From: Basidiobolus meristosporus CBS 931.73
Taxonomy: Eukaryota > Fungi > Basidiobolomycota
Assembly (NCBI GenBank): GCA_002104905.1
Contig: MCFE01000723.1
Span: forward strand, 1-42,124
Direction of reading: 5' to 3'
DNA: 42,124 bases
Shown here: one piece after another, positions 1-33,080 of the stretch
How positions within the stretch are numbered: the stretch's first letter is position 1
Layout of the letters: the number at the start of each line of letters is the position of its first letter
Made by a program: the position numbers and the translations under genes
The notes under the pieces: generated by a model
What the model saw: the letters and a program-made list of their open reading frames with translations, nothing else
The model's database searches: none
What the model was told of the DNA's origin: nothing

Positions 1-882
1 CTTTAGACCTAAAGGGGTGTCTAAAGGGGTGTCTTTAGAGTAAAAGGGCTTCTTGTAGTGGTCTCTAAAGTGGACTTTTCACTAAAGGGGTGCCTAAAGC
101 AGCTTCTTTAGAGTAAAGGGGTCTCTAAAAGGGTCTTTGGACTAAAGGGGTGTCTAAAGGGGTGACTTTAGAGTGAAGGGGCTTCTTAGAGGGGACTTTT
201 CCAACAGAAAAGTGGTAGTTTTCTTGAAGAACTTAGATTGGATTCTTGTGAGCTTTGTAGTCTCTTTACTGATGTAATACCAATCAAAGTCAGAATACTC
301 AACAGTTCAAGTGATGCAGGGGAAGTCTTATAGCCTTGAAACTTGTAATTGTAGTGTAGAGGTTCTGGAAAGAGAGGCTCTCTCTTTATTTTTCAGCTGG
401 GGAAGTCATATATATGAAAATTCCGAAGGATCAAGGCTTTTGGGCAATTGCGCAAGCAATACATGAGATACAGAGCTAAAAGGTTGCAGTGGTGCAGTGG
501 TGCAGATCAGACCTAGGTGCAGCACCTGTGAAAATTTCACATGATTTGATTAGCTGGTCCAAAAGTTACATGCAATCAAAGTCACCATAGTAATCCTAGC
601 TATAGAGGCCCAGTATATCTAATAATTGGACTCTTTTGGTCATAACTCCTTAAGTACTGCTTCAAATGAGCTGTAATTTGAAACATATGTTGACTACTGT
701 GTGTTTTGTATGACATATTATTCTTGGGTGGATTGCCTGTCAGGGTCTGGAGCATTTGTCCTTCAAAGTTGTAAATTCTTGATCTTTCACCTGTGTCTTA
801 CAATAGCAGAAAGTAAAATAAAGAAATGAGTGCAATATTGGTTTTGAGATATTGTAGTAATGGAATACTTTCCATTACCACA
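1..882 (-). repeat. Dispersed repeat (family U part), homologous to 32341-33080; begins with degenerate 12-bp CTAAAGGGGTGT tandem units
   Basis: Collinear match to 32341-33080 (e.g. GACTTTTCCAACAGAAAAGTGGTAG, CAATCAAAGTCAGAATACTCAACAG, TTTTTCAGCTGGGGAAGTCATATATATGA). Homology ends at TTCCATTACCACA (~882/33080). Strand inferred from a degenerate minus-strand frame. Confidence 0.85.
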
Positions 883-1935
883 TTTCTACCAAGAGTAAAT
901 TGGAAGCATTGGGAGCCATATGTGGACATTGTAGGAATATTTATCCAGAAGTGGATCACCAATGCCAACTTGACACATCTACAGCTTTTGTGCAAAGAGC
1001 TTGTCACAGGATTTGAGCAGCTATACTACAAACATACAGTTGAACATGTAGATCTCTGCTGCCACTGTATCCATTTACTACACCATCTTGCTTGGTGTGC
1101 TGAGAATATTGGATCTTGCTTCACCTTTTGGGAGCTTCCTATGGAGTGGATGTGTGGGGAGATAGGATGACAAGTAAAGTTGCAGGTACTACCATATTCT
1201 GATTGCATCAAGAATATTACCTTCTAGTTCATCATGGATGTGATGAGTTTGCACATGGAGGACAGCCAGCAAGAATTGTAAAATACAGAGGACAGATTTG
1301 CACTTGGAGACACCTATGCCTATAGCATTAACAAACTAAGCAGCCCAATGCATGGGTAATTGGTGAGTAATGCAAAGCTGGGTTGGGTGCAACAAGCAGC
1401 AAATTGATACTAGGAAAACTCTACCCAGGTATGCTGGATTTCTCTTAGTCACAAGCCAATTCTTACAACACTCAATACAGAATTCATACTAACAACAGCC
1501 AGGGTGCACCAATAAGGGGACAAGAACCCAGCAGGGAGAAGAAATATATTTGCTAAATACCAATAGATTCTTTGCAGATATCCAGGAAGTATTCATGGCC
1601 AAAGTGGTGGTAATCAAGCATATGTTTGCAAGATATATATGTTACCAGCAATGCAAGGTATATGGCAACTTTGCAAGTATCACACTAAAAAGCCGTAAAG
1701 TTGAGGCAATAGAAAAATGTCAATTGCGGCAGGTGCCTGTTTGTAGAGGTTTGTGAGCAGGAGGCCATAATATTTTTTGATTCAAATTATATGTGTATTA
1801 CCCATGGCAGTAGAGGGTGAGCAAATAAAGAGGGGTGATTCTACCATGGGAAATATCAGTTGTGCAAGGCAAGGTAGAAAAAGGAAGTACCATTTGGTAA
1901 ATTGGTATGATAGCATTATACATAACCAGCTGTAG
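883..1935 (+). pseudogene. CACTA/En-Spm Tnp2-family transposase, C-terminal half, degenerate
   Basis: FEQLYY...CIHLLHHLAWCAENIGSCFTFWELPMEWMCGEIG matches the fungal Tnp2 motif FE.LY...iH.LlHla..i...Gp....wqfpmER.cG. The downstream frame is broken by stops and frameshifts; the end coordinate is approximate. Confidence 0.8.
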
Positions 1936-3214
1936 GCCACCATACTGCTATGATAATGCCATCAGAGGCTTGCAAAGAGGCCATCAAAACACTGTCAGTT
2001 TTTTTGCCATATAAGGCAATTGGATATAATGGCTGGTTAGATCCACTGAAGTAGTTGTACAGTGCACTGGGACTGCACCAATGCCATGCCACCCTTGGCA
2101 AAACACCATACAGACACCATTTTGCCCTGAGCTTTAATTGGCTGGAAAATTAGCCAATGCCATTGTTATCCTATCATAGGATTATGGAAATAGTCACTAA
2201 TTTCAAGCTGTTGGTATTATTGCGGTCTCATCACATGATCTTCACTTCAGAGGACTCTACTATTATAGCTTAGCCTGAATCAGTGCCTAGGAATATTATA
2301 GAAGTAAGTATCCCAGTATCACAGACCAGGAGATTGAACTAGCCCAGAAATAGCCCAAATTACTATATCAATGAGGGCACAAACTTAGCATTTGCCAATG
2401 CAGTCCATATTGATGAGCCCCAGTCTGTAAAAGAGGCCCTGAATAGCCCTCAGACAGACTTTTCCAGATCTGCAATGACTGAGGAGTATCAGGCCTTGAT
2501 GGAAAATCAAACTTGGGATTTAGTCAAATTACCAATCAACCAAAAATCAATTGGATGCAGATGGGTCTTCAAGATAAGACATGTGGCTGATTGTACAATT
2601 GGAAGATGCAAAGCAAGACTTGAGGCCAGAGGATACTCTCAAACAAATGACTTGACTACACTGAGACCTTTGCACTGGTAGCCAAGTTTAACTCCATCAG
2701 GTTAATATTAGCTATTGCAGCCAAATATAGTTCTTTATGCACTAAATGGATGTAAAAACTGCATTTTTAAATGGTGAACTTGACAAAGATGTGTACATGG
2801 ACCAGCCTGATGGGTTTATTGAAAAAGATAAATGCCATTTGGTCTGCAAGCTTAAAAATTCTCTGTATATACTCAAACAATTACCAAGAGCCTGGATTTG
2901 CAATATAGATTCTTATTTGGTATCTTTGAGTCTCCAAAGGAGTAATGTTTACTACAGTATATACTAAAAGCCAGATAGAGCAGATTCAGTTCTATTAGCT
3001 CTATATATGGATGATCTATTATAGCCACCAATAACCTTGAAACCTTAGAAGAGACTAGATTCAGCCTATCAAAGGAGTTCAAGATGTCCAAGCTAGGAGA
3101 ACTCTGTTACCACTTAGGGATAAAGTTCTCTATAGACAGAAGTCCCCAGACTATCATCCTAAGCCCATCCAAGTATATGCAAGATATACTCAAAAGTACC
3201 AAATGGAAGACTGT

Positions 3215-4420
3215 TGTTGTGCATCAACATCTGAAAACATAGCCAATTATACTGCATTAAAAAATCAAGTACCCTCACTGATTTTCCCTAACTCAGACAT
3301 AACTAATCCCAGTTATGGTTTATTTCATCCCACCTCTGAGTCTATTTGTAGCTGTCACATTGGATCAATCATCATATGTCCATAACATTATCAACTTATC
3401 TGCCATGCATTCTCAGATGATTGTTCATCTGAGATCTATCCAACCATTTAGCAGTTGCCAAGATATCAGCTTATTAATGATGCAATTTCATGTATGTTAT
3501 GTGTTGTAAAACTCACAATTTCACCTAAATATTAACCCAACTTAGTAACTTATATCATTACCTCCAAATCCTTGAGAATACTGACCAAATTCCTTGTCAG
3601 GATTTACTTAGAATAATTTCATCAAAATACCAGGTACCCAGAACATGAAAATTCTCAAAGTTGTCCAAACAGCCCCAAACTTTGCACACATGCTCTTGGC
3701 ACCTTCCTTAACCTGTTCTACATGCTTGTAATGCCAATACCATGTAGAAGTATAAATACTACTTTTACATTCAATAGATCATTAAATGAAACCTCATAAT
3801 CTACTTGTTGTCCCAATGACTTCCAATATCTCCAAGACTCTTACAGCAATTTATCCCACCTCTGAGTCTATTTGTAGCTATCACACTGGATCAATTTTCA
3901 TATGGCAACTACATTATCAACTTATCTGCCATGCATTCCCAGGTGATTAGTCATCTGAGATCTATCCAACAACTTGCAGTTGCCAAGATGTCAGCTGATT
4001 AATGATGCAATTTTCATGTATGTTATTCACCTATCAACACCTGCTTTGATCTCAATTAATCCAATCTCTTGGTGCTTACTAATTCAACTTGATCAAAAAG
4101 GCATAGACAAAGTCTACTGAACCTTTTAATTTAGTGTCTGTTTTAACAAAATCAAGATTGCATCTCAGCAAAATTGAGAATTCAACAATTCTGTTCCAGT
4201 TTCTACCCAAGCCTAGCATATCTAGCACTCTCAAGAACATCAAGCCTAGCCTGCACAGCAAACCCACTCTGATGCCTTTGTAGCCAAACCCAGCTATACA
4301 CAAGTCCAATATGAGACCAGAATCTCTCTGCTAATATTTCTACCACTCACTGACAATTCTAAGATTCTACACTTAGTTGTCCCATTTAAGAGTTTTGACA
4401 CTTTTCTCTTGTATACAACT
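3215..4420. mobile_element. LTR-like insertion (probable solo LTR, ~680 bp net) inside the copia RT, itself carrying a nested copia solo LTR
   Basis: Starts TGTTG and ends CAACT. Flanked by a 5-bp direct repeat ACTGT (3210-3214 / 4421-4425). The RT frame ..KMEDC|KLAATPM rejoins across it. Confidence 0.75.
3502..3848 (+). repeat. Solo LTR of the copia family
   Basis: 347 bp, TGTTG...TACAGCA, roughly 90% identical to the reverse complement of 17221-17569. Confidence 0.92.
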
Positions 4421-5199
4421 ACTGTAAACTGGCAGCTACACCAATGAAGACAAACCTTAGCTTGGTCAAAACTTAACCAATCAAGAGAGCTTAGTGCCAT
4501 TTGAAAGCCCTGACTTTCCTTATCAATTTATGGTTGGCAGTCTGATGCATATACTGCTAGGAACAGATCCAGATATCCCATATATAGTGGGAGTAATCAG
4601 CCAGCATAATCAGAACTGTGAATCTGATTATATTGCTGCAATTGATTGGATTCTTAGATACCTAAAGGGAACTGCTAATATCTGCTTAGGGTACTCCTAT
4701 AATAGTTCAGAACAGGATCTTGTGGAATACTCTGATGCTGATTGGGGACAATATTCAGAAGGCAGAAGATCAACCATACAATACATCTTTTATTCTGTAA
4801 AGGAGCAATTTCATGGAATTCAAGAAAGCAACCAACCTTAACATGTTCCACCACAGAGGCAGAGTAAATGGCAGCCTGTGAAGCTACAAAAAGCAATGTG
4901 GTTAAGAAAGCTTTTTAAAGATTTGGGCATATATCAAAAAACACCTACTGCTATATTTCAAGATCATCAAGGATATATACAAATAGGCAGATATCCAACT
5001 TTTCATGCTAAACCTAAGCACATAGAAATTAGACATCATTACATAAGTGAAGCTATAGAAAGTAACTTCGTTGACTTAGCGCACTGCTCTACAGATGAAA
5101 TGATTGTAGACATATTTTCCAGGCCATTAGCTAGATACAAACTTGAATACCTTAGGTCAAATTAGGGCTAGTCAGTGTGAGTATTTAGTTGAGTGGGAG

Positions 5200-5545
5200 T
5201 GTTGTAAAAGTTTGTAATTCCACCTAAGTATATACCTAGCTTAGTCACCCAGATTGTTACCTTCAGACCCTAGAGAATATTGACCCAATTCCTTGTTGGG
5301 ATTTACCTGGAATATTTTCACCAAAATATCAGGTACCCAGAACATGAAAACTCTCAAAGTTGTCCAAACAGCCCCAGACCTTGCACACGTGCTCTTGGGA
5401 CCTTCCTAACTCAATTTTACATGTATGATATACCAAGACCATATAACAGTATAAATACTACTATTACATTCAGTAAATCAATATGTGAGAACCATATAAT
5501 CTGTTTGCTCTCCCAATCACTTTCAATATCTCCAAGACTTTTAGA
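5200..5545 (+). repeat. 3' LTR of the truncated copia copy
   Basis: Follows the PPT; aligns over its length with the family LTR; the last few bases are lost. Confidence 0.88.
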
Positions 5546-5746
5546 GTACCAAGAGCATGTGTGTAAAGTTTGGGGCTGTATGGGCAACCTTTCTGATTTT
5601 ATGTCCTGGGTACCTGATACTGTGGTGAAAATATTATAAGTAAATACCAACAAGGAATTTGGTCAGTATTTTCTAAGATTTGAAGGTCATGATCTAGGTG
5701 ACTCAGTTAGATGAGTATTTAGGTGGAATTAAGAGCTGTTACAACA
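5546..5746 (-). repeat. Inverted half copia LTR
   Basis: Matches 17370-17569 in direct orientation (CCAAGAGCATGTGTG...CCAACAAGGAATTTGGTCAGTA...TTACAACA). Confidence 0.88.
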
Positions 5747-5789
5747 CTCAGAAGGTAAGTCACTGGCTCCCTTCATTACTTCAAGATAG

Positions 5790-6075
5790 CAACTACCCAT
5801 AGTACTTTCCAGCACAGAGGAAGAGTATGTGGCAGGCCATGAAGCTACAAAGGCAATGTGACTGCAAAAGCTCTTGTGAGATATAGGCATATGTCAAAAA
5901 TACCATACTGCACACATGTTCTTGGGACCTTCTTAAACATATTCTATGCAATTATTTTGCCAAGACTATGTAAAAGCATGAGTTCTACTTTGACATTGAG
6001 TAATTCATTAAGTGAAAATCACATAATCTATACGTTCTCCCAATCACTTCCAATAGCTCCAAGACTCTTACAACA
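5790..6075 (+). repeat. Copia RNase H fragment fused to the 3' half of an LTR
   Basis: Translates as LSSTEEEYVAGHEATKAM (cf. LSTTEAEYMAACEATKEAM), then TGCACACATGTTCTTGGGACC...GACTCTTACAACA. Confidence 0.8.
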
Positions 6076-9053
6076 AAGATTGGTTACTACAGAATGATAG
6101 TGTATTACCAGATATGTCTATCACTTGATGGAATTAATTCACATTGAAGCCTAAGTTCACCAGTCAAAGCTAACTGCTTTAGGGCTCGGAAGAGAATAAG
6201 TATTAATCAGGCAAGCTATGGTATTTGCTACAAATGACCTTGTGGCAAAATATTTGTGAGTTTTGCAAGTGATTTGCAGAACTAGAAGAGTCGAAATTAT
6301 CATCCTTTAGCTATCAAGTGCAAATAGAGTTTTCAAATTAATGATGGGAATGCTTTCAGAAGAGTCGTAGAGAGTGGGTGCAAAGTTTGTGGTCATTTCG
6401 ACGAGTTTAGCTTAATGAAGTTCTGGAACCCATAATAATACTTAAAGTCATACGATGTAAAGCATAAGTTAATGATTAATATTAAAACGATGAGTAATTT
6501 AGGTGCTAAACTTAACAATATGATTTGGTATTTTGGGTGAAAATAGTTCATTCCCTTTTTGACAAACTTGAATAGTAAAACGCACTGGAAAAGACCATAC
6601 AAAAGCATTCGATGAGCTCGAAATTTCAATTCTCCCGTTGTGGCCGTTAATTGGTTTGGCACCTGGATCATTGAGACACTATTGCATGTTGGTTAGTTAC
6701 TAGAATCTTGGATACTGACTAGATTTGATTCATTAGAGATTAGATACATACAGATCCGAAGACCTAGTAGAAGTCCGGGAGGTTACCAAATATCCAAACC
6801 TGTCGGAATGCCCCCAAATCGAATGCACAGACTCTCGGAACCTTCCTTAACAATTCGCGTCGTTCTCTTTACAGAGCGGTGCAGAAGGTAAAGAGACTTT
6901 GTTTCAGCTGAATCAGTCATAAGGGGTATACCATATAAGTCCTCTAGTTCACGAACTCACTTTCAACACTCCCCCCAAAAAAAAATCATGCAACAAGATA
7001 TATTTACGCTTTAAGAATTTTTAAATTTGTTTGTAAGTATAAAATTCTGTGTAGCTCCGAAGAATCATTATCGGAATGATTTAAAACAAAGTTCATTTGT
7101 AGCTGAATTTGGTAGAAACCAAGTCGCTGTGCTTTCAGTAGAGCTCTGTCAGGTAAAGTAGTGAATGTATTATAGAAACTTATGGAATGTAAGGTAGAGT
7201 TGGGGGTTTTCGGATGGCTCCGAATGGTCCGTTCATTTTAATGCTTCAACGAATCGAGAGAATTAGCAAAATAACCTACGGAATTGATATCTGAGGATTC
7301 GATTGTACATCAAAATATACTTGGCTATCACGATTTACAACGAATCAAGCTATATTTACATCATGGCAAATGCTGCGCATGATCCAGTTTGGCCTGTGGC
7401 AAGAGCATCCAGGCGGATTCAAGAGAGTTGGCCATTGTGTGCAGGAGAGCTTTCCAAGGCGGTGAAAAAAGGAATATAGAAAGGTGGGGATGCTCTACGC
7501 TTGCTATGCGACCAAGGTATTCCAAGTCCTTCACCATGCTGCTTATCCCATCGCTCAGAAATATCAGGATAAAAGTAACCAATATGGATGAGGTTGAATA
7601 GTATTGCAACGTTGGGTCTTTGCGTCATCATTGTCAATACAAATGGGACCGAACTTCAACCACGCTGATGTGTTGATGAAATGATTGCCCCATTTGGCTG
7701 GATTCACATCAATTTAAATTCGATTAAAAACTGGCTTCAAAATGTGCAGCACTACTGGAATGGTAATCAAGCATCAGTTATGGGTTAGTGGAGTAAGGAT
7801 GATGCACATTCATCGTTGTCTTCTGACATGTTGCATTCCATCCAGGTGAAACCTAGGTCTGATTGAGCACAGCATCACGATGATTTAACACCGGCATCCA
7901 CCGCGGCCTGATCTGTCGTAACTTAGGCATTGGTGGCCACAAGCCTGGCCAGGTGTTGTTGGCCTTCGTTGGGGCTAGCACACAGATCCAAGGCCCATAT
8001 GGCTCGACCGTCCCGGTCGAAAACCCCTGTTTCCAGATAAAAGTCGCTCCTCCACCTCCAGAACGTTCGCGAGACCCACGCTCCAATCTCAAGCAGAACC
8101 GGTTTTTTCGGTGGAAATGTCTTCGAAACACTTTTCGCCTTCGAGAAGCTGATCGTCGACTAGATCTCAGCAATTTTCAACCCAGTCCCAAACTTGGCTA
8201 TACGTTGGTTTATCTCCGCTTGAGGCCTGGATAATCATCCGGTTCCCAAAATGGTCGACACTTCCGGATGCGGATGGTTGGGATAACTTCATTGAGGGAT
8301 GCTTAGAATAGACAGGGAATCGATGGGATGACTTCAGCGATGTGCTGTGTTAGCCCGATACCGGCCTTATCACCACCTGGCCGACTGGCCAATCATGGAT
8401 TCCCTTTGGACAGAGGGAAGGAGGCACTTGGGCGATTTGGAGCTGGCCTGATAAGCGTGGTCCTTCGACAACAATCAGGAATGGGCTGGGTTGCATGTCC
8501 ACGCTTGATTAGTCAGCGGCTTAGTTGCTCAAGGCCGCTGTGATCCAGCGTCGCATTGGGTGGAGGTCGTGGCATATCCAGGTTGGGCCTCCCAGGGTTG
8601 CTGGCGAGAGGGCCGGGTGGGGTGGAGTGCGACTGGGAGCTTTATTCGGGAATGTAGGTTTGCGACCTTGGCGCACGTGGGGTGGGGAAGGTTGGCACAT
8701 GTGTCAGCAGTTCGGTTGGGTGGGGCGTGGCTGTATGTGGAGAATGATTATATAAAAGTTGAATGGGTTACAGAGATTTGTTTGAGGCCTGGTTCATGTT
8801 GCGCTCGTCTACCAATACATCAGATTATACAGGGGTTTTGTGAGGGCTTAATGCGGGAATACAACTGGTTGATTTGTTCAACAAGGATACGGGATTACTA
8901 TGTAGGAATAAACACGACGTGAGTGAATGAACAGGGGAGGGGCAGGTTTCGTCTGGAACGAGGTCAGTTCGCACCATCACAGGGATATCGGATAAATACG
9001 GAACTTGGTATATGGGATTCGCTAATCGTGGTCAGCCAGGGGCGATCTGGTGC

Positions 9054-10469
9054 TCAGCATACTTCCATGCGATCACCGAACCATTTGCTACGGCAGTCAT
9101 CGATATTCACAACCGAGCCAGAGGCTCTGGCCTGCTCAGCCGCAAGTGCGTACATTCGAGACCGAAGCTCTTCGAAGCCATGTTCGCGGCCCCATTGACC
9201 GCGTCCCCAGCGAATATTTTCCAGAAATTCTTCGATGAGGCCGTAATCACCGTCGTTCTCGACTGCCTCTCCCGCAGCATTGATGTCGGGCCGGATGAGC
9301 TCACTGCGTCGAGTGAGGAAGTCGAAATGCTTGATGACATTGCCGTCGCACTCCAGCTCGCCCAATGTCCCGAAGATGCGGGTCATCCGCGAGGTTTGCG
9401 AGCTTCCGGAAATCATGGTAAAGCTGCACGTCTTTCCTTCGTCAAACTCCATGTTGACGATATGACTGTCACAGACTTCGGTCTCCAGCGGACTAGCGTA
9501 GGAGCATGAGTCGCCCATCGTCAGCCCAGCGTCTGCTATTTCCACGTTGACGATGCCGCTCAGGTACGGTGTCCACTCGGACTCGCGAATGACGATGGGG
9601 TTGGAGTAGATTTCGGAGTACACGAAGGGGTTCTCGGACTTCCTATTCCCTCCTTGGAAGAGGCTTCCAAAAGCACTGACCTTGCGGCAGGGCGAATCCA
9701 TCAGCCAACTAACGAGGTCGATGCCATCAATGCTTTTCGAAACCAGCGAGAGCGAGGTGTCCTTTCGCCGACGAATATTCTTGGTGACCTGTGAAGGAAT
9801 CCATGGTGTAAGTCCGTGGGGGATCGTATGGAAGATGTCTGCATCATGCGTACCAGATGGGGTATCGATTGGAAGCCGACCTTTTCAATGTGTTGGATGC
9901 TCATGATCTCCCCGATGGAGCCCGAGTCGAGCATCTTCTTGAGGGTCCGGTTACACGGCTTGTAGCGGATCGTATTCCCGACGGAGAAGATAACCGAGTT
10001 TTTGGCCGCCGCCTCAACCACTGCTTGGCACCTTCCGAGGTCGATGGCCTGTGGCTCTTCGAGCAGGATGTGGTATTTCTTCTGGGCGAATACGATGCTG
10101 ACCTCCTCTATCGAGGAATCGGTGCTTGTGATAAGGACAGCGTCGGCGATTTTCGGGAGGCTGGCTAGCTCTCTCCAGTCGCAAAAAACTCGGTCTGAAG
10201 GGAGTTCGAGTCTCTACAACGTTACACAAAGATATTAGTCTTCTTCTCTAAAGCAACGCCGGCCGGCAGTCAAGGGTGCTTACCTCGCTAAGGATGTTCC
10301 GCCTGAAGTCCACTGGGGAGACCACGGCAACAACCTTCATGAGTTGAGGATGTTGCAATGCGAAACTAGTGTAAGTGGTTCCTTTATTGCCAGTGCCGAT
10401 AATACAAACTGTGACGGGGGCGTGTCGGTTGGAGGGAGAAGAGCCTAGCAAAGGTTGCAAAGGGGGCAT
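9054..10469 (-). CDS. Gfo/Idh/MocA-family (StrI/YteT-like) NAD(P)-binding oxidoreductase homolog, 3 exons (10469-10284, 10213-9854, 9788-9054), 426 aa
   Basis: Rossmann start VCIIGTGNKG; RVFCDWRELA, ADAVLIT, YHILLEEP, IGEIMSIQHIEKVG, RKVSAFGSL, VNMEFDEG, RIFGTLGEL, AAEQAR. Two phase-0 introns: GTAAGC..GACTAAT..TAG (70 nt) and GTACGC..CAG (65 nt). No stops or frameshifts. Confidence 0.93.
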
Positions 10470-13400
10470 AGCGAGCAGGCTTGGCGTGTTGAGGTGAGGA
10501 ATGGAATTGCAGGGTGTGGTTTGGAGAGCGCTCAAGGGAACGTTGTCAGTGGGAGTGGAGATAAGTAGCTGAAGCTTTGGTGTGGGGAAGCTGGATAGGT
10601 GGTACAAGACAAAGTGTGGTGTCTGCAAGTCAAGCACAATTATATGTGAGATCTAACGAGTGTATGGAAAATATCGATGAGTGTCCGGTATATATGGGAA
10701 TGGACAGCTGGACGCTTGCAAGGCCAGAAGGAGTGAATAAGAGCTAGATCCCTGCTTACACACTCATCCTTTCCCATCAATCTCTCGTAATCTAGGCCTA
10801 ATGCGCGAGTATTTCTTTGAGTCACATTAATCTTGAGACTTGGGCTATATGCGGCACACCATTGGCTCGGCCGATCGAAGTCAGTTGATTTATATTAGCA
10901 GAATGCTAGATTTACCAGCCAGTACGACGGTTCCTGGTCTCGACTCGAAAACAGTTTGAGACATCAACGTCACAAAGCTAACAAGGCGATGGCAGAGCAA
11001 TCGAGGATGGCTAGCTCTTACCACGCTAAGACCCCGGCATTGCTGGGTGCTTGGAGAGCCAGCGTCGTGAGAGCACAGCCTTCCCGTGTGACTAGGGGGC
11101 GAACTAGGCTGCTGCCAATGACCACTGCATTTGGCACTTCCGATCAGAACTGACGGGTTTTACGTGATGAAGTCGTAATCCCCCACCTACTAGATACCAC
11201 CTGTTTGCCATATTAGCACCGCAACAACCGGCTTAATATATCGGCCCATTGTTTCATCACGAAGCAGCTAGACGTGGACTCGAGCCTTCACGACCACCCT
11301 ACTAGGTGATTCAGGATAGACAGCGCACAGAATCGCTCGATACGTCCAATGCCGACCGCTTACTCTGACTGTTGCTGCCCTTGTCAGTTGGGTGCGACCA
11401 TATCGAGAGCAGGGGAGGAGTAAGATTCGCAGGTGATTGCTGGATGCAACAAGAACGGATCTGACTCGCTGGTTCCTATTTTTGTCGGGATTTTCTCACA
11501 ACGGTCGATGCACTTCCAGTATCAGAGCAAGCACACCACTAGCCACATCCCTTTCCACGTCCAATTCCATATTTGATGAGATGCCTTCCATATCAAAGCG
11601 ACCGATTCTCTACACGGTGATCCAGGTGAACTCCGAGCTCTACTCAGCATGGACCAAATCCGAACGAGTTTGAGGCACCTCTGGTTGCTGCCAAAACGGA
11701 TCTCGCTGCGAAGGAGCGAGCCTTTCGCTAGGGATTCGGTCCAACCGCACGCCCTCAATCGCTACGAGGATGGGCCAGATTCCCTCCGATAGGCCTCGAT
11801 GGAAACTGGCCAAGTTTGTTTGCGTTGCTGGGCCACGATGAGAGGCTTGATAACCACCTCGCCAGCTCTCCGGTGGTAACTTTATTCTGCATTCTAGCTA
11901 AATTCAATCAAGAACCAATTCTGAAAAGAGGCTATTCTCGAATGGGCTCAGAGGGGGCAGCGAGCAATAGGCTCCACCAATCACCGGGCTTCACTGGATT
12001 ATAAATCAAATAAGACTAAATAGTCTACGGATGTCCAAGAGTGGTGGTTGCCTTTCTGGGCTGACATTCGCCGTCCATTCTTGTCGATTTACGAAACGCC
12101 ATGCTGCTTCGAGGGTGGCGACCTGACCCCTCGCGAAGCCCGCCTGCAGCTCCGGCACTTCCCCTCCTGGTGGAGATGGGCCATACCCGCCAGATCACCA
12201 AGATCATTGATCGCCCTACACGATCAGCTGTGGCTACCTCAGACTAGGCTTCAGTAATTGCACCACATCACCAATGGCTTGTTCCACGCTTGTGCCACCC
12301 GGGAGATGAGGCACAAGGCTCAAGGGTTTCGAAACCTATGACTTGACCGGCACCAGTCCTTCAAATGGCCCTGGTAGCCTGGTTGGTTGGGTTGGCCAGG
12401 GCAAGGCGAGAGAGCACAGCAACGAATGCAATGCAAATGCATCCTGGGAAAACACCATGGGTAGCGCTTCCTCTACACTGCACTGGGAAGCATTCCCGAA
12501 TAACCTGAAGGTGGAACAAGATTCCTGTGAAATGAGCACAAGCGGCGTACCAGATCGATATATTGAAAACCTGACTACCGCGATCTAGCCGCATCGCCCA
12601 GCCAGAAATCAAGATGCAATATATCATTCTCAATGGAACAGGTATTCTAGGTTCCAGTGTCAGGTAACCGTTCAGGGCTGGGAGATGGGTGAGCCAATCA
12701 GGCGAAACCCGAAGACAATCTCGCATTATCTGGGCCGTTGCTGTCATCATGCGCACCACCCGGCCCCAAGCTCCAGGGAGATGTATCTTGTCTACAGGGC
12801 AGTGTGTACACCGGTTCTAGGTGGCATCATCAGCACTGCATATGTGGGTTGTACATGCTACATCAGTTGCGTACCAGTTGCGTAGAGGGGAGTTGGGTTA
12901 CTCGAAGTGGAGGGTGATATAAAGGTGAGATTATATCGATCTGCAGAGTACAAACTGGGAGTGAAGGGTGTACGGAATATCTAGAAGCTCGTGGTTCTCG
13001 ACTCTCACTCATGGAACAGCTGGACGTCAGTATGAAGTGCTGCATTCTCGACACCCTGCCTGGAGATGGTAGCGGTTTCAGAAGCTCCGACTAGAGCGTC
13101 CATACCAGAACGAGCGGTCGCATCGACTCGGGGCATTTGGAATCTTGCTGAACCTCTTCGGGCTCGGGGTCGATCTAGAGATTCCGGATGGGTTGGGCGG
13201 ATGATTTCGACGGTTGAGAAATTTATTGTGAATATGGTATATCTTTTCCACACCTTCCCCAATATATCCAGTCGAAGCAGCCGGTTGCCATTTGCAGCCA
13301 GGTCTTGGTTTGGAACCCTCTTGGCTTGAGTAGCAGATCGATCGAGGTGCCTGATTCCCAAATCGTAGGAAGGACACGATGTCCTTGTCATGATTATCCT

Positions 13401-13801
13401 TTGTTGGAAGGGGGAAGGCCGATATATTGGGTTAGGTTTCTGGTTAATGAGATGTCCTTTCCGGATATGGCAAATCATTTGGCGATATTGCGCTGCAGAC
13501 CGTGTCTCTCGGTCACAGCCGACACCCACCGCATTTCCGGGTGCCAGTGCTGTGCAGTTGTGATGATTCATGGTCGTTTACATCTATGCTCTATATGGTG
13601 CATCTACGGGTTGGTGAGACATTTACACAATTCATTGAAGGGGATTTCTCAGCTTCGACTAATCATCGGAAGCTCGTACAGGAAAACAATGAAAGTCTAA
13701 CTATATTACAGGCAGAACGATCTACAAAATTATTAATGGTCGGCAAATCGGGGGATTCTGCTACGGTGGCGCCAGCGACTTGCCAGACTGTGTGCCTCGG
13801 A

Positions 13802-15511
13802 TTATCGGCTGAGTATGGAGAAGACGAAGTTGACTGGCTCCTCCGTGTCGCTGTCGGTATCGTCGCCGAAGCCCGTTTCCGTTTCTAGAAGGCTGAGCTC
13901 TCTAAGATACTCCCGCGTGGTTGCCTCATACTCCTTGATCTCTTGCTGGAACGGCTCGAGTTCTACGAGGGGCATCCACTCGGGCTCGGTTTCTCCACGG
14001 AAATGCACCAGGTAGAACGTCCCATCTACGCGTACTTTCTTGTCAAGAACCCCTTGTAAGATCTTAGAGGGAGCAGCCTTCTCATGGGAGTGCCTTCGCA
14101 GCTTGGCACTGTGGTTGCTGGCCCTTGTTCGTTGCAGACATATCTCGGACTCCGCGACGCTCTCCGCCTCACTCTCCTGGGACTGATCTCCAGGAGTGTT
14201 TGCGTCGGAAGAGGGATGGGCGCCTTCTACATACGAATCCTCATTTTCACTTTCCTCCACCTGCTCCTTCAAAGAAACCCCGTAGTTGCCGGGTACGTCC
14301 ACTGCCTGTGAGGACTGGATGTTTTCGGAGGAGTCGGAGTCTTCACTTTGGCTGTTAGCGACATGCTCGGTCTCTGATATCGGCGACTTGGCGTACGGGC
14401 TTGGCCGGGGCTTCAAAGGTTTGGTCCTTTTGACCGCAGCATGTGTTGGTGTTCTAACGCTCGGGGACATGTTGGACGGGGATGCGTGGTGTAGTAGCGG
14501 GGATGGCGCCAAGTTCGATGCGGTCCTCTTTTTCAAAAATACCGCCGGTGTGGAGGTGACTCCGCCAATGTTGCCGTGCGAATCGGACCTGTATGGGGTG
14601 GCATGGGGTTTTGCATTGGTAACTTCTTCCCCTTCGCTGTCGGTTTCACTGTCACTGCTCTCGGAGCCTTGGGACTCATGCTGACTACTGGATGCGGATA
14701 TCTCAGGCTCGCTCTCGGAGATTACATCCGATGAGTCATCCGAATGACCACCGCTTTCTGAATCGGAATCTATACTCGCTCGACGGCTCTCTGGGAGATT
14801 CAGGGGCTCAACCGGATGATCGTAAGAGGCTTGGGCAGACAGTGTAGGTGATCCGTTCGTGGGTGATTCGACATCTTGGGTTTCGGGGATGACTTCATCA
14901 TCGCTTTCAAGTTCGTTGAACTCACTGCTTACCAAATCGGCATTTGTCTCTTGCACGAGAGTGTCTTGTTCATTAAGAATGGAAGGATCATACGACCGAT
15001 TCAGTTCTGGGCTTAAACTGGGCCTTCCTTCTTCTCTGGTTAGCTCTTCCTCGCTTTCGGCGTCGCTCGGGAAGCCCAGTGTGGTTTCTGATTCACTTGA
15101 GACATCCGAGGAGGGGACCTCCAACCCTGGACTCGTTGAGATATACTCATCGGTGAGTTGGCCTTCTTCTTCATGAAGGGGTAGAACTTCTTGGAGCAAG
15201 GTATTTTCGCTTTCTAAGCCTCTATCTATGCATTCATCTTCTTTATCTTCGCCCACATGGGTGCTGTTGTCAACGGTGGTTTCGTTAGAGTCTTCATCGG
15301 ATTCGTCCTCGAACGGGATCTCGGCAAGGATGTCGCTGGGTACTTGTTCGAGGGTGCTGTCTTGGTAGACCGTTTCAGTAGGAGAGTAGTGGGTATCACC
15401 GACGCGAAATCCAACGGTTAGGGTGGGGAAGTGACCTATCTTCGGTCGCTTTTTTAGCTCTCCAGGTGGTTCGAGTGGAGTCACGTATTGAAGGGAGCTA
15501 CGCTTCGGCAT
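13802..15511 (-). CDS. 569-aa acidic/Ser-rich disordered protein with C-terminal chromodomain-like domain
   Basis: Uninterrupted 1710-nt ORF with CACC-ATG context and basic NLS-like KKRPK. C-terminal VLDKKVRVDGTFYLVHFRGETEPEWMPLVELEPFQQEIKEYEA (13922-14065) aligns with the HP1-type chromodomain. The frame is open ~50 codons upstream, so a 5' exon is possible. Confidence 0.85.
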   Translation of the reverse strand: MPKRSSLQYVTPLEPPGELKKRPKIGHFPTLTVGFRVGDTHYSPTETVYQDSTLEQVPSDILAEIPFEDESDEDSNETTVDNSTHVGEDKEDECIDRGLESENTLLQEVLPLHEEEGQLTDEYISTSPGLEVPSSDVSSESETTLGFPSDAESEEELTREEGRPSLSPELNRSYDPSILNEQDTLVQETNADLVSSEFNELESDDEVIPETQDVESPTNGSPTLSAQASYDHPVEPLNLPESRRASIDSDSESGGHSDDSSDVISESEPEISASSSQHESQGSESSDSETDSEGEEVTNAKPHATPYRSDSHGNIGGVTSTPAVFLKKRTASNLAPSPLLHHASPSNMSPSVRTPTHAAVKRTKPLKPRPSPYAKSPISETEHVANSQSEDSDSSENIQSSQAVDVPGNYGVSLKEQVEESENEDSYVEGAHPSSDANTPGDQSQESEAESVAESEICLQRTRASNHSAKLRRHSHEKAAPSKILQGVLDKKVRVDGTFYLVHFRGETEPEWMPLVELEPFQQEIKEYEATTREYLRELSLLETETGFGDDTDSDTEEPVNFVFSILSR

Positions 15512-17180
15512 GGTGATGTCTATTTGGCCACTACCGCTACCGCTGGGACTGGACGTTAATGAGGGGGTTCTAGTTTTAGCCTGTGTTGGGTTTTGCTCGA
15601 AGTTTCGCCAGCAACCAGGAGATTGATTAGGGAGGGGAGTTTCTAGAATCGGGTGATGTGATTAGGACCCACGAGGATTTCAAACGAAGCTGCGACTGAA
15701 TTGGCTCGACCCAGATGGCCTTAACATAGGAACTATCAATAACCAACAAAAGTCGCGTTGTTTTCTTCTCTGTTGATAGGATATCGGTTGATGTGAGCAA
15801 GGCACTTTTTTTTTCCAAATCCTCTGTCGATTTCCTATGCATCCATATTTTGGATGTTCGATTCCTCCCCTCACGATTCTCCATGTTTTTCGTCGGCCGC
15901 TTGATTGGTCCCTGCAGCCGGTCAGGATTGCCATACTAGTTAGCTACTGGATGATCGAATTTAGTCAACATTAAGGATGGAATCGTTGGTGGCTAGCATT
16001 ATGGTTGCTGGTCTTCACTTTGTGCCAGAGAGGTGCACATTGAGGAACAGCGAACGATCACGTCAACAGGTGTACTGCGCTGAGCCTAAAGTACTCGTGG
16101 TGTCCTTAGTCAATCTTGCTTCCCAGGGAGCACCACCACAACATATAGTCTGTTAGTGACACTTTAATTGGGGAGGCAATGGCTAGCTGGGAGATGAGGT
16201 ATCAGCAGACTTAGAGGCCACGTTAATGTACGATTGAGGTTCCCAGCATCCGGCTTCTGAACTTCCGGTGATTGCCATGGGGAGGGTGCTGAGATTTGGC
16301 GAACATGGCGGCGCCGTTCCAAGAATTTCCGAGAATCACGAATTGACCCCTAGCTCGATTCATTGGAAATCAATGCAATGAGTCGAGCTTCCACTGATTC
16401 TCGCACCACACCTATACGTGTGGATCGGTGTGGACGTGATGGCAGGCCCCATTTTTATGCCTACGGGTTGAGCACTCGGTGTTTGGGATATTCAATGATT
16501 TTATTTGCTGGCTAGGATTACCGTATTCACGCTACGGTAAGGAGACTGAAATACTACGCCCGAAATGATACGATGAGAGGCTAAGAGAAGGTGAAGATGC
16601 TCTCAATGGTTGGGTCGCCATCAGAGTTTTGGATCTTTGTCGAGCACTCCGAGTCAGATTGGATCATGCTGGAAATGGCCATCCCTGGTCAATGTGGTGC
16701 TTGAGATTTGTTGACCAAATTCGCACACTGGTTTGTAACCCATCGATGAGAAATCCGGTCCTGAAATGTTTTGTCTTCACTGATTGCCCCCACTGGAAAC
16801 TTGGAAATCAGGTTCGTTTTTAATACTGCCGCAACGTTGAGGGGTGAAAGTGGCTGGCCTCTTTGAGGTGCAGTTGTATTTCTTGAAATTAGCTAGTTTC
16901 ATAACTACTCATGTAGTAGTAGCTTCCACTCAGTTTTCCTGCGACCTTCTTCAAGACACTCCTATCATTACTATTGCCAAGTGGTGTGCTTGATCTTTGT
17001 CCAATACTCAAGAAGTGAAACCTATATCTTTTCTGAGTAATCCCAAACCATTGCCAGATGCCTAAATTGAAATGTCTACTTTCAACAGATTTGCAAACCA
17101 AAAAGTTGTATCACAAGAACTTGTAACAGCAACCATATATAGTCGGAAGTCTAAAATGACCTATGTATCTTAATCAACCA

Positions 17181-17580: not shown

Positions 17581-20500
17581 CTAAATGCTCATACTGACTA
17601 GTCCTAATTTTGACCTAAGATATTCAAACTTGTCTCTAGCTAATGGTTTGGTAAATATGTCTGCAATCATTTCATCTGTAGGACAGTAAACTAAGCTAAC
17701 TAAATTACTCTCTATAGCTTCACGTATGAATTGATGTCTAATATCTATGTGCTTAGTTCTAGCATGAAAATTTGGATTTCTACCTAATTGTATACATCCT
17801 TGGTTATCTTGAAATAAAGTAATAAGCGTTTATTGACATAGGCCTAAATCTATAAAAAGTTTTCTTAACCACATTGCTTCTTTTGTAGCTTCACATGCTG
17901 CCATATACTCTGCCTCTGTGGTGGAAAGTGCTACGGTTGGTTGATTTCTTGAATTCCATGAAATTGCTCCTTTACAATAAAGAAAGGTGTATCCTGTGGT
18001 GGATCTTCTGTCTTCTAAATTTTGTCCCCAATCAGCATCAGAGTATCCCACAAGATCATGTTCTGAGTCCTTATAAGTGTATCTTAAACAGATATCAGCA
18101 GTTCCTTTTAGGTATCTAAAAATCTGCTTAACTGCTGCAATATGATCAGATCCATAATTCTGATTATGTTGGCTGACAGCTCCCACTGAATATGAGATAT
18201 CTGGATGTGTTCCAAGCATGATATACATGAGACTGCCAACCATAGATTGATAAGGAAAGTCAGGGCTTTCAGATGGCACCGAGCTCTCTTGATTTGGTTG
18301 AGTTTTGACCAAGTTAAGGTTTGTCTCCATTGGGGTAGCTGCCAATTTACAGTCTTCCATTTTATACTTCTTTAGTATATCTTGAGTATACTTGGATTGG
18401 CTTAGGGTGATAGTCTGGGTACTTCTGTCTATGGAGAACTTAATCCCTAAGTAGTAACTGAGTTCTCCTAGATCGGACATCTTGAACTGTTTAGATAGGC
18501 TGGATTTAGTCTCTTCCAATGTTGCTAGGTTATTGGTGGCTATAATAAGATCATCCACATATAGAGCTAATAGAACTGGATTTGCTCTATCTGGCTTGTA
18601 GTATATACAATAGTCAGCATTACTCCTTTTGAAACTCAAAGATTCCAAATAAGAATCTATCTTGCAATTCCAGGCTCTTGGTGATTGTTTGAGACCATAT
18701 AGTGACTTTTTAAGCTTGCAGACCAAATGGGGGTTATCTTATTCAACAAACCCATCAGGCAGGTCCATATACACGTCCTCATCAAGTTCTCCATTCAAAA
18801 ATGCAGTTTTTGCATCCGTTTGATGAATAAAAAACTTATATTTGGCTGCAATAGCCAATATTAATCTGATGGAATTAAACTTGGCTACCGGTGCAAAGGT
18901 CTCAGTATAGTCAAGTCCTTTTGTTTGAGAGTATCCTTTGGCTACAAGTCTTGCTTTGTATCTTTCAATTGTACCATCAGCCTTGTATTTTGTCTTGAAG
19001 ACCCATCTGCATCCAATTGATTTTTGGTTGATTAGTAATTTGACTAAGTCCCAAGTTTGATTTTCCATCAGTGCCTGATATTCTTCAGTCATTGCAGATC
19101 TCCAAAACTTTGTCTGAGGGCTATTTAGGGCCTCTTTTACAGTCTGGGGCTCATCAATATGGACTGAATAGGCATAGGCTAAGTTTGTACCCTCATTGAT
19201 ATAGTAATTTGGGCTATTTCTTGTCCAATTGGATCTCCAGGCATTTGATACTGGAATGATCACTTCTGGGATATTCCTGGGCACTGATTCTGGCTAAACC
19301 ACAGTTGTAGAGTCCTCTGGCATGAAAAAATTTTCATTGTTTTGCTCTGATTCAATCCTGACAATTGGTGGACTTGAGATCAAATTTTTGCCATCATCTG
19401 ATGTCATTTTTTGTGAAAATTTTGAATCTTCATCAAACAACACATCCCTGGACTTGATCAGCTTCTTTGCTTTGGTATTGTAGAGTCTGTATGCCTTACT
19501 CTCATTGCAGTAGCCCAAAAATATGCATTTTACACTTTTTGGCTCAAATTTTGACTGATTTCCGGCCAGTTTTTTGGCATATGCTGTACACCCAAATATT
19601 CTTAGATGTTCTGCACTTGGTCTGTATCCATACCATGCTTCAAATGGAGTAGAATCACAAAGTATTCTGTTTTAACTCCTATTTTTAAGATATACAGCAG
19701 TGGCAACTGATTCCGCCCAAAAATCATAGGATAATTTTGGATCATGGATCATAGATCTTGCCATATCAATTATTGATCTGTTAGCTTGTTCTGCTACTCC
19801 ATTTTGTTGTGGGGAGTATGGTACAGTAGTCACTTGCTTTATCCCATGAATCTTGCAGAAGTGGATGAAGAGTTTTCAGGTATATTCTCCACCATTGTCA
19901 GAGCGTATTTTCTTGATTTTTTCACCAGTTTTTCTCTCCACCATAGCTTTGAACTCCCTGAGCTTGGACAGAGCTTCTTCCTTTCTCTCCATGTAGTAGA
20001 CCCATGTGTATCTTGTATAATCATCAATAAAGGTGATTAAATACTTCATCCCGCCTAAGGATAAATTTTGCATAGGTCCACACAGATCTGAGTGAATTAG
20101 ATCAAATATTTTCTTAGTTTTGATTAAACCAGAGCTCTTGAACGGTTGTCTGGCTTGTTTCCCATATATGCAGGCTGCACAGTGCTCCAAATCAGCTGGG
20201 GGATCAATAATCACTCCAGAAATTAGCTGTTCTTTGATCATTGTATGCAAATAATCAAAATTGATGTGTCCAAATCTCCTGTGCCAAAGCATTGGTGTTT
20301 CTTCATTTAAGTTACTTATATTGGCTTCCAGATATGATGGAATATAAGTCAACTTGTATAGATTCTGATCCCTGATGCCCAAAGCAATATGGGCACCATT
20401 TTGGTCAGTGATCCTGCATCCAGAATTGTCAAAACTGAACTGAGTCCTTCTGCTGTAGCCTTGCTTACAGAGAGTAGGGTCTTGGCTATTTCTGGTACAT

Positions 20501-30519: not shown

Positions 30520-33080
30520 AAAGGCCATCACAGATTCTAAGGCCTCTGACTAAGAGGTATTGATTCCATCAGGACACTGTGCAAAGACCATAAAAAAATA
30601 ATTGTACCCCAGATAACATAAAAGACTTGGTCAAATTTTTCACTACAACAATACAAAAGCGGCTTTTGATTAGTTCTCTGCCAATTTTCTCACATTCTGA
30701 TCACAGACATTCTATCACCTCCTATGTTTATGTGCATTGATTAGCTATTGCCTCTTTTTCACACTCCTCACTTCCTGACTCATTTGTTTCTCTTACTTTT
30801 CATGCATACAAATTGATTTAGATCCATTGAAACTTCAGTTGTACCTCAGTTGCCAATTGTGTGGACCAGTACAAGTCCCTATACCCTACACCAACATTAA
30901 CCTCAACCCCACACTAAACAAGTAACTCCATTAAAATCCACCACTCAATAAGTATTTCTGCTGTAACACTCTGCTTCCACAACTTTGGCAGGTGCCCTAC
31001 TGCTTTATGCCACTGTTTATTCACTGGTTCCCATATGTCCTGGTCTTCAGCTGGCACTGTAAGGTCTAGCTTTTAATCAGCTAGTCTTGGCAAAAAGTCC
31101 TTGCGATATTCAGGTGTGTTTTCTAGAGCACTGCTCTTGAGGAAGTGCTGCAAACTCTTGGTGTGCCTACTGATGTTCCAAAACTCCACTAAAGGCAATG
31201 TGATAACCTTTTGAGTTCTTGATGTTGCTACTTTGTCTGTCAGTGTGATCTCCACTCTGTCAACAATGGAGGACATGGATGCTGTGGTACACAAACTGCC
31301 TTTCTCTGCAAACTCATCTACCGCACTGGAGTGTAGCACATTTTAGCCATGTGTGTCAGTGGGATCTCCACTCAGTCAACAATGGAGGATGTGGAGGCTG
31401 TGGTACACAAATTGCCTTTTTCTGCAAACTCATTTACCTTGCTGAAGGTAGCTCAACTGGCTGTGCTTCCAACTCTTATGAAAACATCTGTTTTCTTGTT
31501 GGTTGTTCTTCTTGGCTATAATGGGATTCAGTCTGTTCTAGGCTTACAGCATTAATCAGCAACAACTGCAGCTTTTTTCTTATGCTTCCCTGTCTCTGGC
31601 TTGGTGGACTTTTTCCCCTTTACCTTTTCCTTTCTCACTACCAGGTCTTTCACTACTACTTTGTCTGAGTGCTTCTTGTATTGAACTACATTTTCTCCTT
31701 AATATATGCTGCTCTGATGCATCTGTTTTAGCTTGCTTGTCCCTTGCTGGCACTCTGGAGGCAACCTAACACTTCTTTCCCACTTGTCTTGAGCTCTCAG
31801 CCCAAGCTGCAATGGGCTCCTGAGGTAGCCGCTTGTTTTTTTCACTGCTACTTTGACTGAATAATTCTTGAGTAGACCTACACTTTCATTGGTAAATTTT
31901 GTGCTAGTGCATCTGTGTCTACCTACCATTCCCTTATTGCCACTCTTCCAGCTACCTGATGCCTCTTTAACACTTGTTTTAAGCTTTCAACCCTGTTTGT
32001 AACAGGCTTTTGAGGAAGTGTTGTGTTATATTATGATTAGTTTGGGGCTTGTTCCACAATGTAGAGGCTAATCAACAATATACAACAACTTCCAGTATGC
32101 TAATACTGAAATAGTTTATTGGGAGTTTGATATACCAATAAAAGATATAACTTTCACTAATATCCTCAATCTTAGGCTCAAAATATACTATAGGCAGTAT
32201 TTCTCACTCCTACAGCAGTGTTCTGACCTTCTGTTGACTAATGGGCTTATTTACTTTTATAGCAACTTCTCCTTATTTGGAAGTCACTTTCCTTTCTGCA
32301 AGAATAAATCCTAATATGGAAATTCTAAGCTTACCTTTAACCTAAAGGGTGTGCTGTAGAAGTCTCTAAAGGGGTCTCTAAAGGGGTGTCTAAAGGGGTG
32401 TCTTTAGAGTAAAGGGGTTTCATAGAGAGGACTTTTCCAACAGAAAAGTGGTAGTGTTCTTGTAGAACTTAGATTGGATTCTTGTGAGCTTTGCAGTCTC
32501 TTCACTGTTGTAGTACCAATCAAAGTCAGAATACTCAACAGTACAAGTGATGCAGGGGAAGTCTTATAACCTTTAAACTTGTAATTGTAGTGTGGAGATT
32601 CTGGAAACAGAGGCTCTCCTTTATTTTTCAGCTGGGGAAGTCATATATATGAGATTTCTGAAGGATCAAAGTTTTTGGGCAATTGCGCAAGTAATACATG
32701 TGATACAAAGCTAAAACTTTGCAGTGATGCAGATTGGACATAGATGCAGCAGCTGGTTCAAAAGTTACACGCAATCAAAGTCACCATGGTAATCCTAGCA
32801 ATAGAGGCCTAGTATATGTAATAATTGGACTCTTTTGGTCATAACTCCTTAAGTGCTGCCTCAAATGTGCTGTAATTTGAAACATGTGTTGGCTACTGCA
32901 TGTTCTGTATGACATAACCATCTTGGGTGGACTGCTTGTCAGGGTCTGGAGTATTTGCTCTTAAAAGATGGAATTTCTTGATCTTTCACTTGTGTGTTAC
33001 AATAGCAAAAAGCAAAATAAAGAAATAAGTGCAATACTGGTTTTGAGAAATTATAGTAATGGAGTACTTTCCATTACCAC
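30520..33080 (-). repeat. Family U: multi-copy degenerate coding region of unknown family
   Basis: 30520-31750 is collinear with 38450-39495, and 32341-33080 with 1-882. Conserved translation NISRH.K.LQ.F.K.SA.ENT..Y.KD.L..LAD..LDL...AEDQDIWE. Confidence 0.8.

Follow-up and report, generated by a model that had tools for sequence, protein, structure and literature searches.

The locus and its gene model

The window analysed here is the whole 42,124-bp contig MCFE01000723.1 of Basidiobolus meristosporus CBS 931.73. Its reverse strand carries, at positions 9054-10469, an intact three-exon gene of the Gfo/Idh/MocA type, the deposited protein of which is P0001. A preliminary description, made from the letters of the window, had read a clean spliced open reading frame at this place. 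Our gene model confirms this, i.e., both introns are of the GT..AG type and all junctions are in phase 0 (Table 1). Furthermore, the position of intron 1 is identical in the paralogs P0002 and P0003.

For intron 2, two acceptors are available and both preserve the reading frame. With the CAG at position 9789, intron 2 is 65 nt long and the product has 426 aa, among them a 'VTK' that corresponds to 'ITK' of the paralog P0002. The deposited P0001 model uses the AAG acceptor at position 9780 (74-nt intron, 423 aa). The choice between the two is without effect on the other results. Here, exons were searched singly and codon statistics were computed per exon, while whole-protein analyses used the deposited P0001.

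Table 1. Features of the P0001 gene and of its surroundings (positions in the window; motifs as they read in P0001).
Feature	Position	Strand	Remarks
Gene island	8001..17000	.	CpG-replete, GC-rich; P0001 gene and two orphan genes
Start ATG	10467-10469	-	start common to P0002 and P0003
Exon 1	10284..10469	-	62 codons; Rossmann strand beta1, beta2 ending Ser51
GTGNKG loop (Gly-rich)	10380-10397	-	in exon 1
Intron 1	10214..10283	-	70 nt, GTAAGC...TAG, phase 0, branch-like GACTAAT
Exon 2	9854..10213	-	120 codons; STDSSI, LLEEP, GNTIRY
STDSSI	10109-10126	-	exon 2
EEP (within LLEEP)	10052-10060	-	exon 2
GNTIRY	9962-9979	-	exon 2
Intron 2	9789..9853	-	GTACGC...CAG, 65 nt; in the deposited model to 9780
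Exon 3	9054..9788	-	244 codons and stop; C-terminal alpha/beta domain
KSIDGID	9717-9737	-	exon 3
Cys-rich insert remnant	9483..9650	-	P0001 residues 226-281; predicted disordered
NDGD	9246-9257	-	exon 3
SR..LAAE	9135-9161	-	exon 3
Stop codon	9054-9056	-	ends exon 3
Orphan gene, 188 aa	13005-13571	-	without Pfam match
Orphan gene, 569 aa	13802-15511	-	without Pfam match; sub-threshold PWWP hint

With regard to base composition, the gene differs strongly from most of the contig. Its CpG observed/expected ratio is 1.05, and that of the 9-kb gene island is 0.86, compared to 0.21 and 0.12 in the flanks (1-8000 and 17001-42124, respectively), where GC content is 0.39-0.40 and GpC is normal (~1.1). 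This agrees with the CpG-rich DNA noted in the preliminary description. The flanks of the island are rich in repeats, and their CpG depletion looks like the outcome of cytosine methylation and deamination, or of a RIP-like process, confined to these repeats. Beside the P0001 gene, just the two orphan genes from Table 1 are called on the contig.

Two parts of the window (17786-19539 and 30657-31672) hold repeat families that also occur upstream of P0002 (L002:560-3240; tblastx, 54-72% identity). P0002 itself is present on two B. meristosporus contigs (L002:10001-11405 and L003:10001-11405) with zero coding differences and the same neighbours. Either the segment was duplicated recently, or the assembly holds uncollapsed copies of it.

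Family membership and predicted fold

Scanning the exons one by one against Pfam gave matches to PF01408 and PF22725/PF02894. The complete protein P0001 lies above the gathering cut-offs of all three families, with 53.7 bits for the N-terminal Rossmann domain (PF01408, cut-off 24) as well as 28.0 bits vs. 22.9 and 34.0 bits vs. 27 for the C-terminal alpha/beta domain (PF02894 / PF22725). That is, the HMMER check with PF01408 and PF02894 that had been proposed beforehand is positive for both profiles.

Based on a 65-sequence alignment, AlphaFold2 models P0001 with a mean pLDDT of 81.5 and a pTM of 0.81 with the usual pair of a Rossmann and an alpha/beta domain, such that the two-domain Gfo/Idh/MocA fold is predicted to be retained. 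A Foldseek search with this model returns 3db2, 5uhw, 3ezy and others (E ~1e-20, TM-score by target 0.7-0.8), the neighbours being Gfo/Idh/MocA sugar and inositol dehydrogenases and NAD-dependent glycosidases. A sequence search among solved structures found no close relative of P0001. By sequence and tree, its nearest relatives form the canonical YteT-like subfamily, and this parent family shows 32-38% identity to P0001 with profile E-values down to 1e-116. The name 'StrI' is just the database label of one paralog. Canonical YteT-like proteins, e.g., the B. subtilis protein labelled YteT, fish zgc:154075 and the B. ranarum protein P0102, have the same domain order as P0001 and are predicted to share its fold.

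The models differ in the region that holds a Cys-rich insert in the parent family. For P0001 (residues 226-281), AlphaFold2 gives a pLDDT below 50 and no secondary structure, and in the alignment this remnant is poorly conserved even among the closest paralogs (clade A, see below). For the canonical P0102, which is modelled with a mean pLDDT of 94.4, the equivalent region scores 93-97, and the insert forms a small, confidently folded helical subdomain.

Loss of the parent family's motifs

We compared the motifs of P0001 with those of 56-62 real homologs from bacteria, archaea, early-diverging fungi, springtails, molluscs and fish. This parent family is highly uniform, i.e., its members share GAGxRG and an acid ending strand beta2 in addition to a common motif set and the Cys insert. 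In P0001, GAGxRG reads GTGNKG and the acid is replaced by Ser. Furthermore, LLEKP (K in 100% of the homologs) is changed to LLEEP, T.D..H (H 100%) to STDSSI, [CG]HVLRY to GNTIRY, KSCHD.D (H and D 100%) to KSIDGID, GHGGGD to ENDGD and SH..FAAE to SR..LAAE. The H.AHS[FY]VRGNW block is missing, and the cysteines of the insert (C-x2-C-x5-C...C-x3-C) are all gone. Thus, seven of seven canonical YteT-like motifs are altered, at positions that are 96-100% invariant in the parent family from bacteria to fish. In other words, each of the substitutions that the preliminary description had named stands when measured against real homologs, and so does the loss of the Cys-rich insert.

The same picture is obtained from the 106 columns that are conserved to at least 85% in the outgroup. 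P0001 retains 63 of them (~60%), bacterial members retain 101-105 and springtail proteins 94. Most of the family-invariant His and Cys residues are also gone. Relative to canonical YteT-like proteins, P0001 is therefore a protein of the same architecture without the EKP lysine, the His-Asp of CHD, HxAHSFVRGNW, GHGGGD, the His of SH and the Cys-rich subdomain. Still kept are the Gly-rich loop, Glu114, Pro116, Arg145 and Tyr146.

To relate these changes to the active site, we used a HMMER alignment of a canonical member with PDB 3moi, in which K115 and H200 are the EKP lysine and the catalytic His. Sites 1 and 2 of the family are formed by Lys104/Lys106 and Tyr189/His195 in CcAAOR and PlIDH (PMC11612644). 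According to the sequence alignment, P0001 has Glu115 instead of the site 1 Lys and an Asp instead of the site 2 His200. Judged by these aligned residues, P0001 fits the definition of a pseudoenzyme, i.e., an enzyme homolog without key catalytic residues.

A lysine-less clade in Basidiobolus

P0001 is one of ten Basidiobolus proteins from six lineages that form a single clade. Nine of them are monophyletic, and ten when the long-branch P0012 is included (support 100). The EKP lysine is missing in all ten, and the position reads EEP in clade A, ENP in clade B and ESP in P0012. In clade A, P0001 is joined by P0002 from B. meristosporus and P0003 from B. ranarum, a pair that comprises the closest relatives of P0001 and carries the same substitutions. 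Clade B comprises three ortholog pairs of the same two species. The genus also has a fully canonical copy: in P0102 from B. ranarum every motif is intact, and the protein is 77% identical to a Calcarisporiella protein. The tree with fungal paralogs that had been suggested as a check hence puts P0001 inside a lysine-less Basidiobolus clade. P0001 is not an isolated case of motif loss but belongs to a set of ten paralogs without Lys, in a genus that also has a canonical copy. The restriction of the clade to Basidiobolus refers to word and profile searches in which the best 8,000 candidates were scored.

KN[IL]HDID and three cysteines, the first ones of the insert, persist in clade B but are absent from clade A, so the loss was stepwise. 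The lysine was lost on the stem of the whole Basidiobolus clade, in a duplicate of the canonical gene. On the clade A stem, which is long (0.62-0.74 changes per site), the His-Asp, most of the invariant His and the whole Cys-rich subdomain then followed. The lysine-less clade as a whole is split into at least six lineages.

P0012 (B. meristosporus, 380 aa) makes up the sixth lineage, with an end branch of 0.92. It reads LLESP and SLSDVDL, and the N-terminal Gly-rich loop is missing in the deposited model. The protein may be mis-modelled or truly decaying.

P0002 and P0003 have a common upstream Lys-rich gene (329/312 aa, 57% identity) and are therefore syntenic orthologs. This gene is the sole neighbour common to the two and speaks for orthology, not for function. 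P0001 branches outside of the P0002/P0003 pair (support 95-97) and is thus older than the species split. Sequence searches found no P0001 ortholog in B. ranarum. We also considered the neighbourhood as a clue to function and rejected it: P0002 adjoins MFS sugar transporters in B. meristosporus, but this holds neither in B. ranarum nor in the window. Unrelated genes flank the remaining paralogs, and we detected no neighbourhood that is conserved across the clade.

Concerning the origin of the clade, an early tree with bacterial outgroups only had hinted at horizontal transfer from bacteria, which we dropped after adding eukaryotic members. With fungal, animal and canonical Basidiobolus members, the clade falls into an unresolved group beside fungal and arthropod canonical sequences, and one of the trees weakly supports it as the sister of P0102 plus the Calcarisporiella protein. 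Duplication of a fungal gene would be the simpler origin.

In the same parent family, P0081 from the fungus gnat Bradysia coprophila groups within the springtail clade. This placement is odd for vertical descent and could reflect transfer or contamination.

Selection and evolutionary rate

Exon-by-exon NG86 estimates give a pN of 0.17-0.18 for P0001 vs. P0002 or P0003, and of 0.11 for P0002 vs. P0003. Within clade A comparisons, pS ranges from 0.69 to 0.86 and is saturated, such that the resulting pN/pS values (0.14-0.25) refer to saturated pS. The omega values from GY+F3X4 are 0.053, 0.048 and 0.054 for exons 1, 2 and 3, respectively, and are approximate given the saturated synonymous sites and the three clade A sequences. 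Omega is here an average over long branches and would not reveal a loss of function that occurred recently and only in P0001. An omega of ~0.05 strongly indicates long-term purifying selection on the clade A copies. The preliminary description had named orthologs that keep EKP/CHD, together with a dN/dS near 1, as the signature of simple decay. What we observe is the reverse, i.e., P0002 and P0003 share the substitutions and omega is far below 1.

In Tajima relative-rate tests, P0001 is not accelerated compared to P0002 or P0003 (22-28 vs. 18-27 unique changes, p = 0.14-0.89). As a group, the degenerate proteins evolve ~2.5x faster than the canonical P0102 (97-99 unique changes in P0001 vs. 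36-39 in P0102, p ~1e-7).

Shifted constraint and the cofactor site

We also related the conservation within the degenerate clade to that of the canonical family. It is lowest in the EKP surroundings (residues 101-120), the former HxAHSFVRGNW block (181-200) and the insert (221-280). The peak is found at residues 321-340 of the C-terminal beta-sheet (LGELECDGNVIKHFDFLTRR, mean pairwise identity 0.83), and the region of beta2 and the helix that follows it (41-80) also ranks among the most conserved. The C-terminal beta-sheet is the oligomer interface in the Gfo/Idh/MocA fold. For GFOD1, the same interface role of the beta-sheet has been restated (PMC11612644).

Twelve positions are near-invariant within the degenerate clade while being rare in canonical proteins. 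The most clear-cut of them is residue 51, where beta2 ends, which is Ser in 9/9 aligned clade proteins (the tenth is without this region) and Glu/Asp in 26/27 canonical ones. Downstream of Ser51, P0001 carries Arg56-Arg57. In levoglucosan dehydrogenase, Glu43 selects NAD and excludes NADP, and in the NADP-dependent AFR an Arg binds the 2'-phosphate (PMC11612644). Since a site no longer in use would not be expected to keep an invariant Ser, P0001 may still have a dinucleotide site, now of the NADP(H) type. Should P0001 indeed be a redox-dead binding protein under selection, we would regard retained NADP(H) binding as a serious possibility rather than as a probable trait. Pointing the other way, Arg29 of the Gly-rich loop, present in 100% of the canonical members, is replaced by K, W and K in clade A, i.e., the cofactor site may also be decaying.

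A candidate pseudoenzyme and its alternatives

As the best explanation, we propose that P0001 is a redox-dead paralog (pseudoenzyme) of the YteT-like Gfo/Idh/MocA branch that is maintained by selection and acts by binding. Given the residues lost and the constraint kept, we consider this reading reasonably probable. P0001 would no longer perform hydride-transfer chemistry on a substrate. [quoted passage not shown] Most likely, such a protein would serve as a cofactor- or ligand-sensing subunit or as a partner of other family members. A wider version extends this to the whole Basidiobolus clade, i.e., its six lineages, kept in two species, would be subunits without catalysis that sense NADP(H) or a ligand and, through the conserved beta-sheet face, regulate or partner the canonical enzyme or other targets. 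We rate this version as rather speculative and unlikely to hold in full. If true, the sensing-subunit clade would be a fungal counterpart of Gal80 and GFOD1 that arose independently and has expanded, with a pattern of loss opposite to that of GFOD1.

Against the redox-dead reading speaks the nature of the substitutions themselves, as Lys to Glu and His to Asp place catalytically competent residues in the site. P0001 could be a rewired enzyme in which Glu115 and Asp200 have taken over from Lys and His, perhaps for non-redox chemistry or a cationic substrate. This would fit the fixation of these catalysis-capable residues in all three clade A proteins, the strong selection, the retention of the Gly-rich loop together with Glu114, Pro116, Arg145 and Tyr146, and the varied chemistry of the family, which includes NAD-dependent glycoside hydrolases among the structural neighbours. 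However, the loss is much broader than two residues, covering ~40% of the family-conserved columns, most invariant His and a whole subdomain. In addition, the Lys position holds Asn in clade B and Ser in P0012, so there is no shared new catalytic residue, and the surroundings of the old active site are the least conserved. Overall, we find rewiring unlikely. Even less is to be said for a divergent subfamily in which P0001 works as a normal dehydrogenase and the lost motifs are non-essential. While its Pfam domains score above thresholds and a GxGxxG is present, the altered positions are 96-100% invariant in the parent family, including the site 1 Lys and the site 2 His, and they are intact in the canonical copy of the genus (P0102). 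This makes normal activity highly improbable.

A further alternative is that P0001 is redundant and has fallen silent or is decaying, left behind in a contig full of transposons, with P0002 carrying the function. The contig consists indeed mainly of CpG-depleted repeats with three called genes only, and the B. ranarum searches found no ortholog of P0001. A silent copy is at odds with the intact open reading frame, the conserved start and splice positions and the omega of ~0.05. It also does not match a rate equal to that of the syntenic pair though the duplication predates the species split, nor a CpG ratio of 1.05 in the gene that is unlike that of its flanks. We consider silent decay improbable, less so than ordinary dehydrogenase activity but more so than rewiring, and retain the redox-dead, selected binding protein as our preferred reading.

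Under this preferred reading, the Gfo/Idh/MocA fold would gain a pseudoenzyme clade that evolved independently, is maintained by selection and expanded within a lineage. Its graded loss (Lys first, later His-Asp, other His and the Cys-rich subdomain), with a canonical copy as in-genus control, would offer a natural series for separating the fold features needed for cofactor binding from those needed for catalysis.

Relation to known systems

[quoted passage not shown] Yeast Gal80 is a repressor with this fold that binds NAD(P) and Gal4/Gal3. Its likeness to P0001 is conceptual, namely the use of an oxidoreductase fold as a non-enzymatic, possibly dinucleotide-sensing regulator. Gal80 is neither among the 47 solved-structure sequence matches of P0001 (E up to 0.01) nor among its listed structural neighbours from Foldseek, and the P0001 gene has no GAL-like context. 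The preliminary description had proposed a fold-retaining, non-catalytic protein comparable to Gal80. For this proposal, the loss of Lys and His and the predicted fold speak in favour, whereas a specific sequence link to Gal80 is not found.

Human GFOD1 and GFOD2 are Gfo/Idh/MocA pseudoenzymes that do not bind NAD(P), keep sites 1 and 2 (Arg94 and Tyr179 in GFOD1) and bind NKIRAS2 (PMC11612644). P0001 shows the opposite pattern to GFOD1, i.e., it lost sites 1 and 2 and kept the Gly-rich loop and the EKP glutamate. Compared to GFOD1/GFOD2, the Basidiobolus proteins are furthermore of independent origin, fungal and part of another subfamily.

Our results also draw attention to the parent YteT-like family, which ranges from bacteria to fish with an invariant set of Cys and His residues. 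In the literature searched, we found no functional study of YteT or zgc:154075. The canonical proteins (P0102, P0013, P0151 and others) show a near-invariant C-x2-C-x5-C...C-x3-C along with many invariant His. Located in a helical insert that is predicted to be folded, this Cys/His set suggests a putative metal site.
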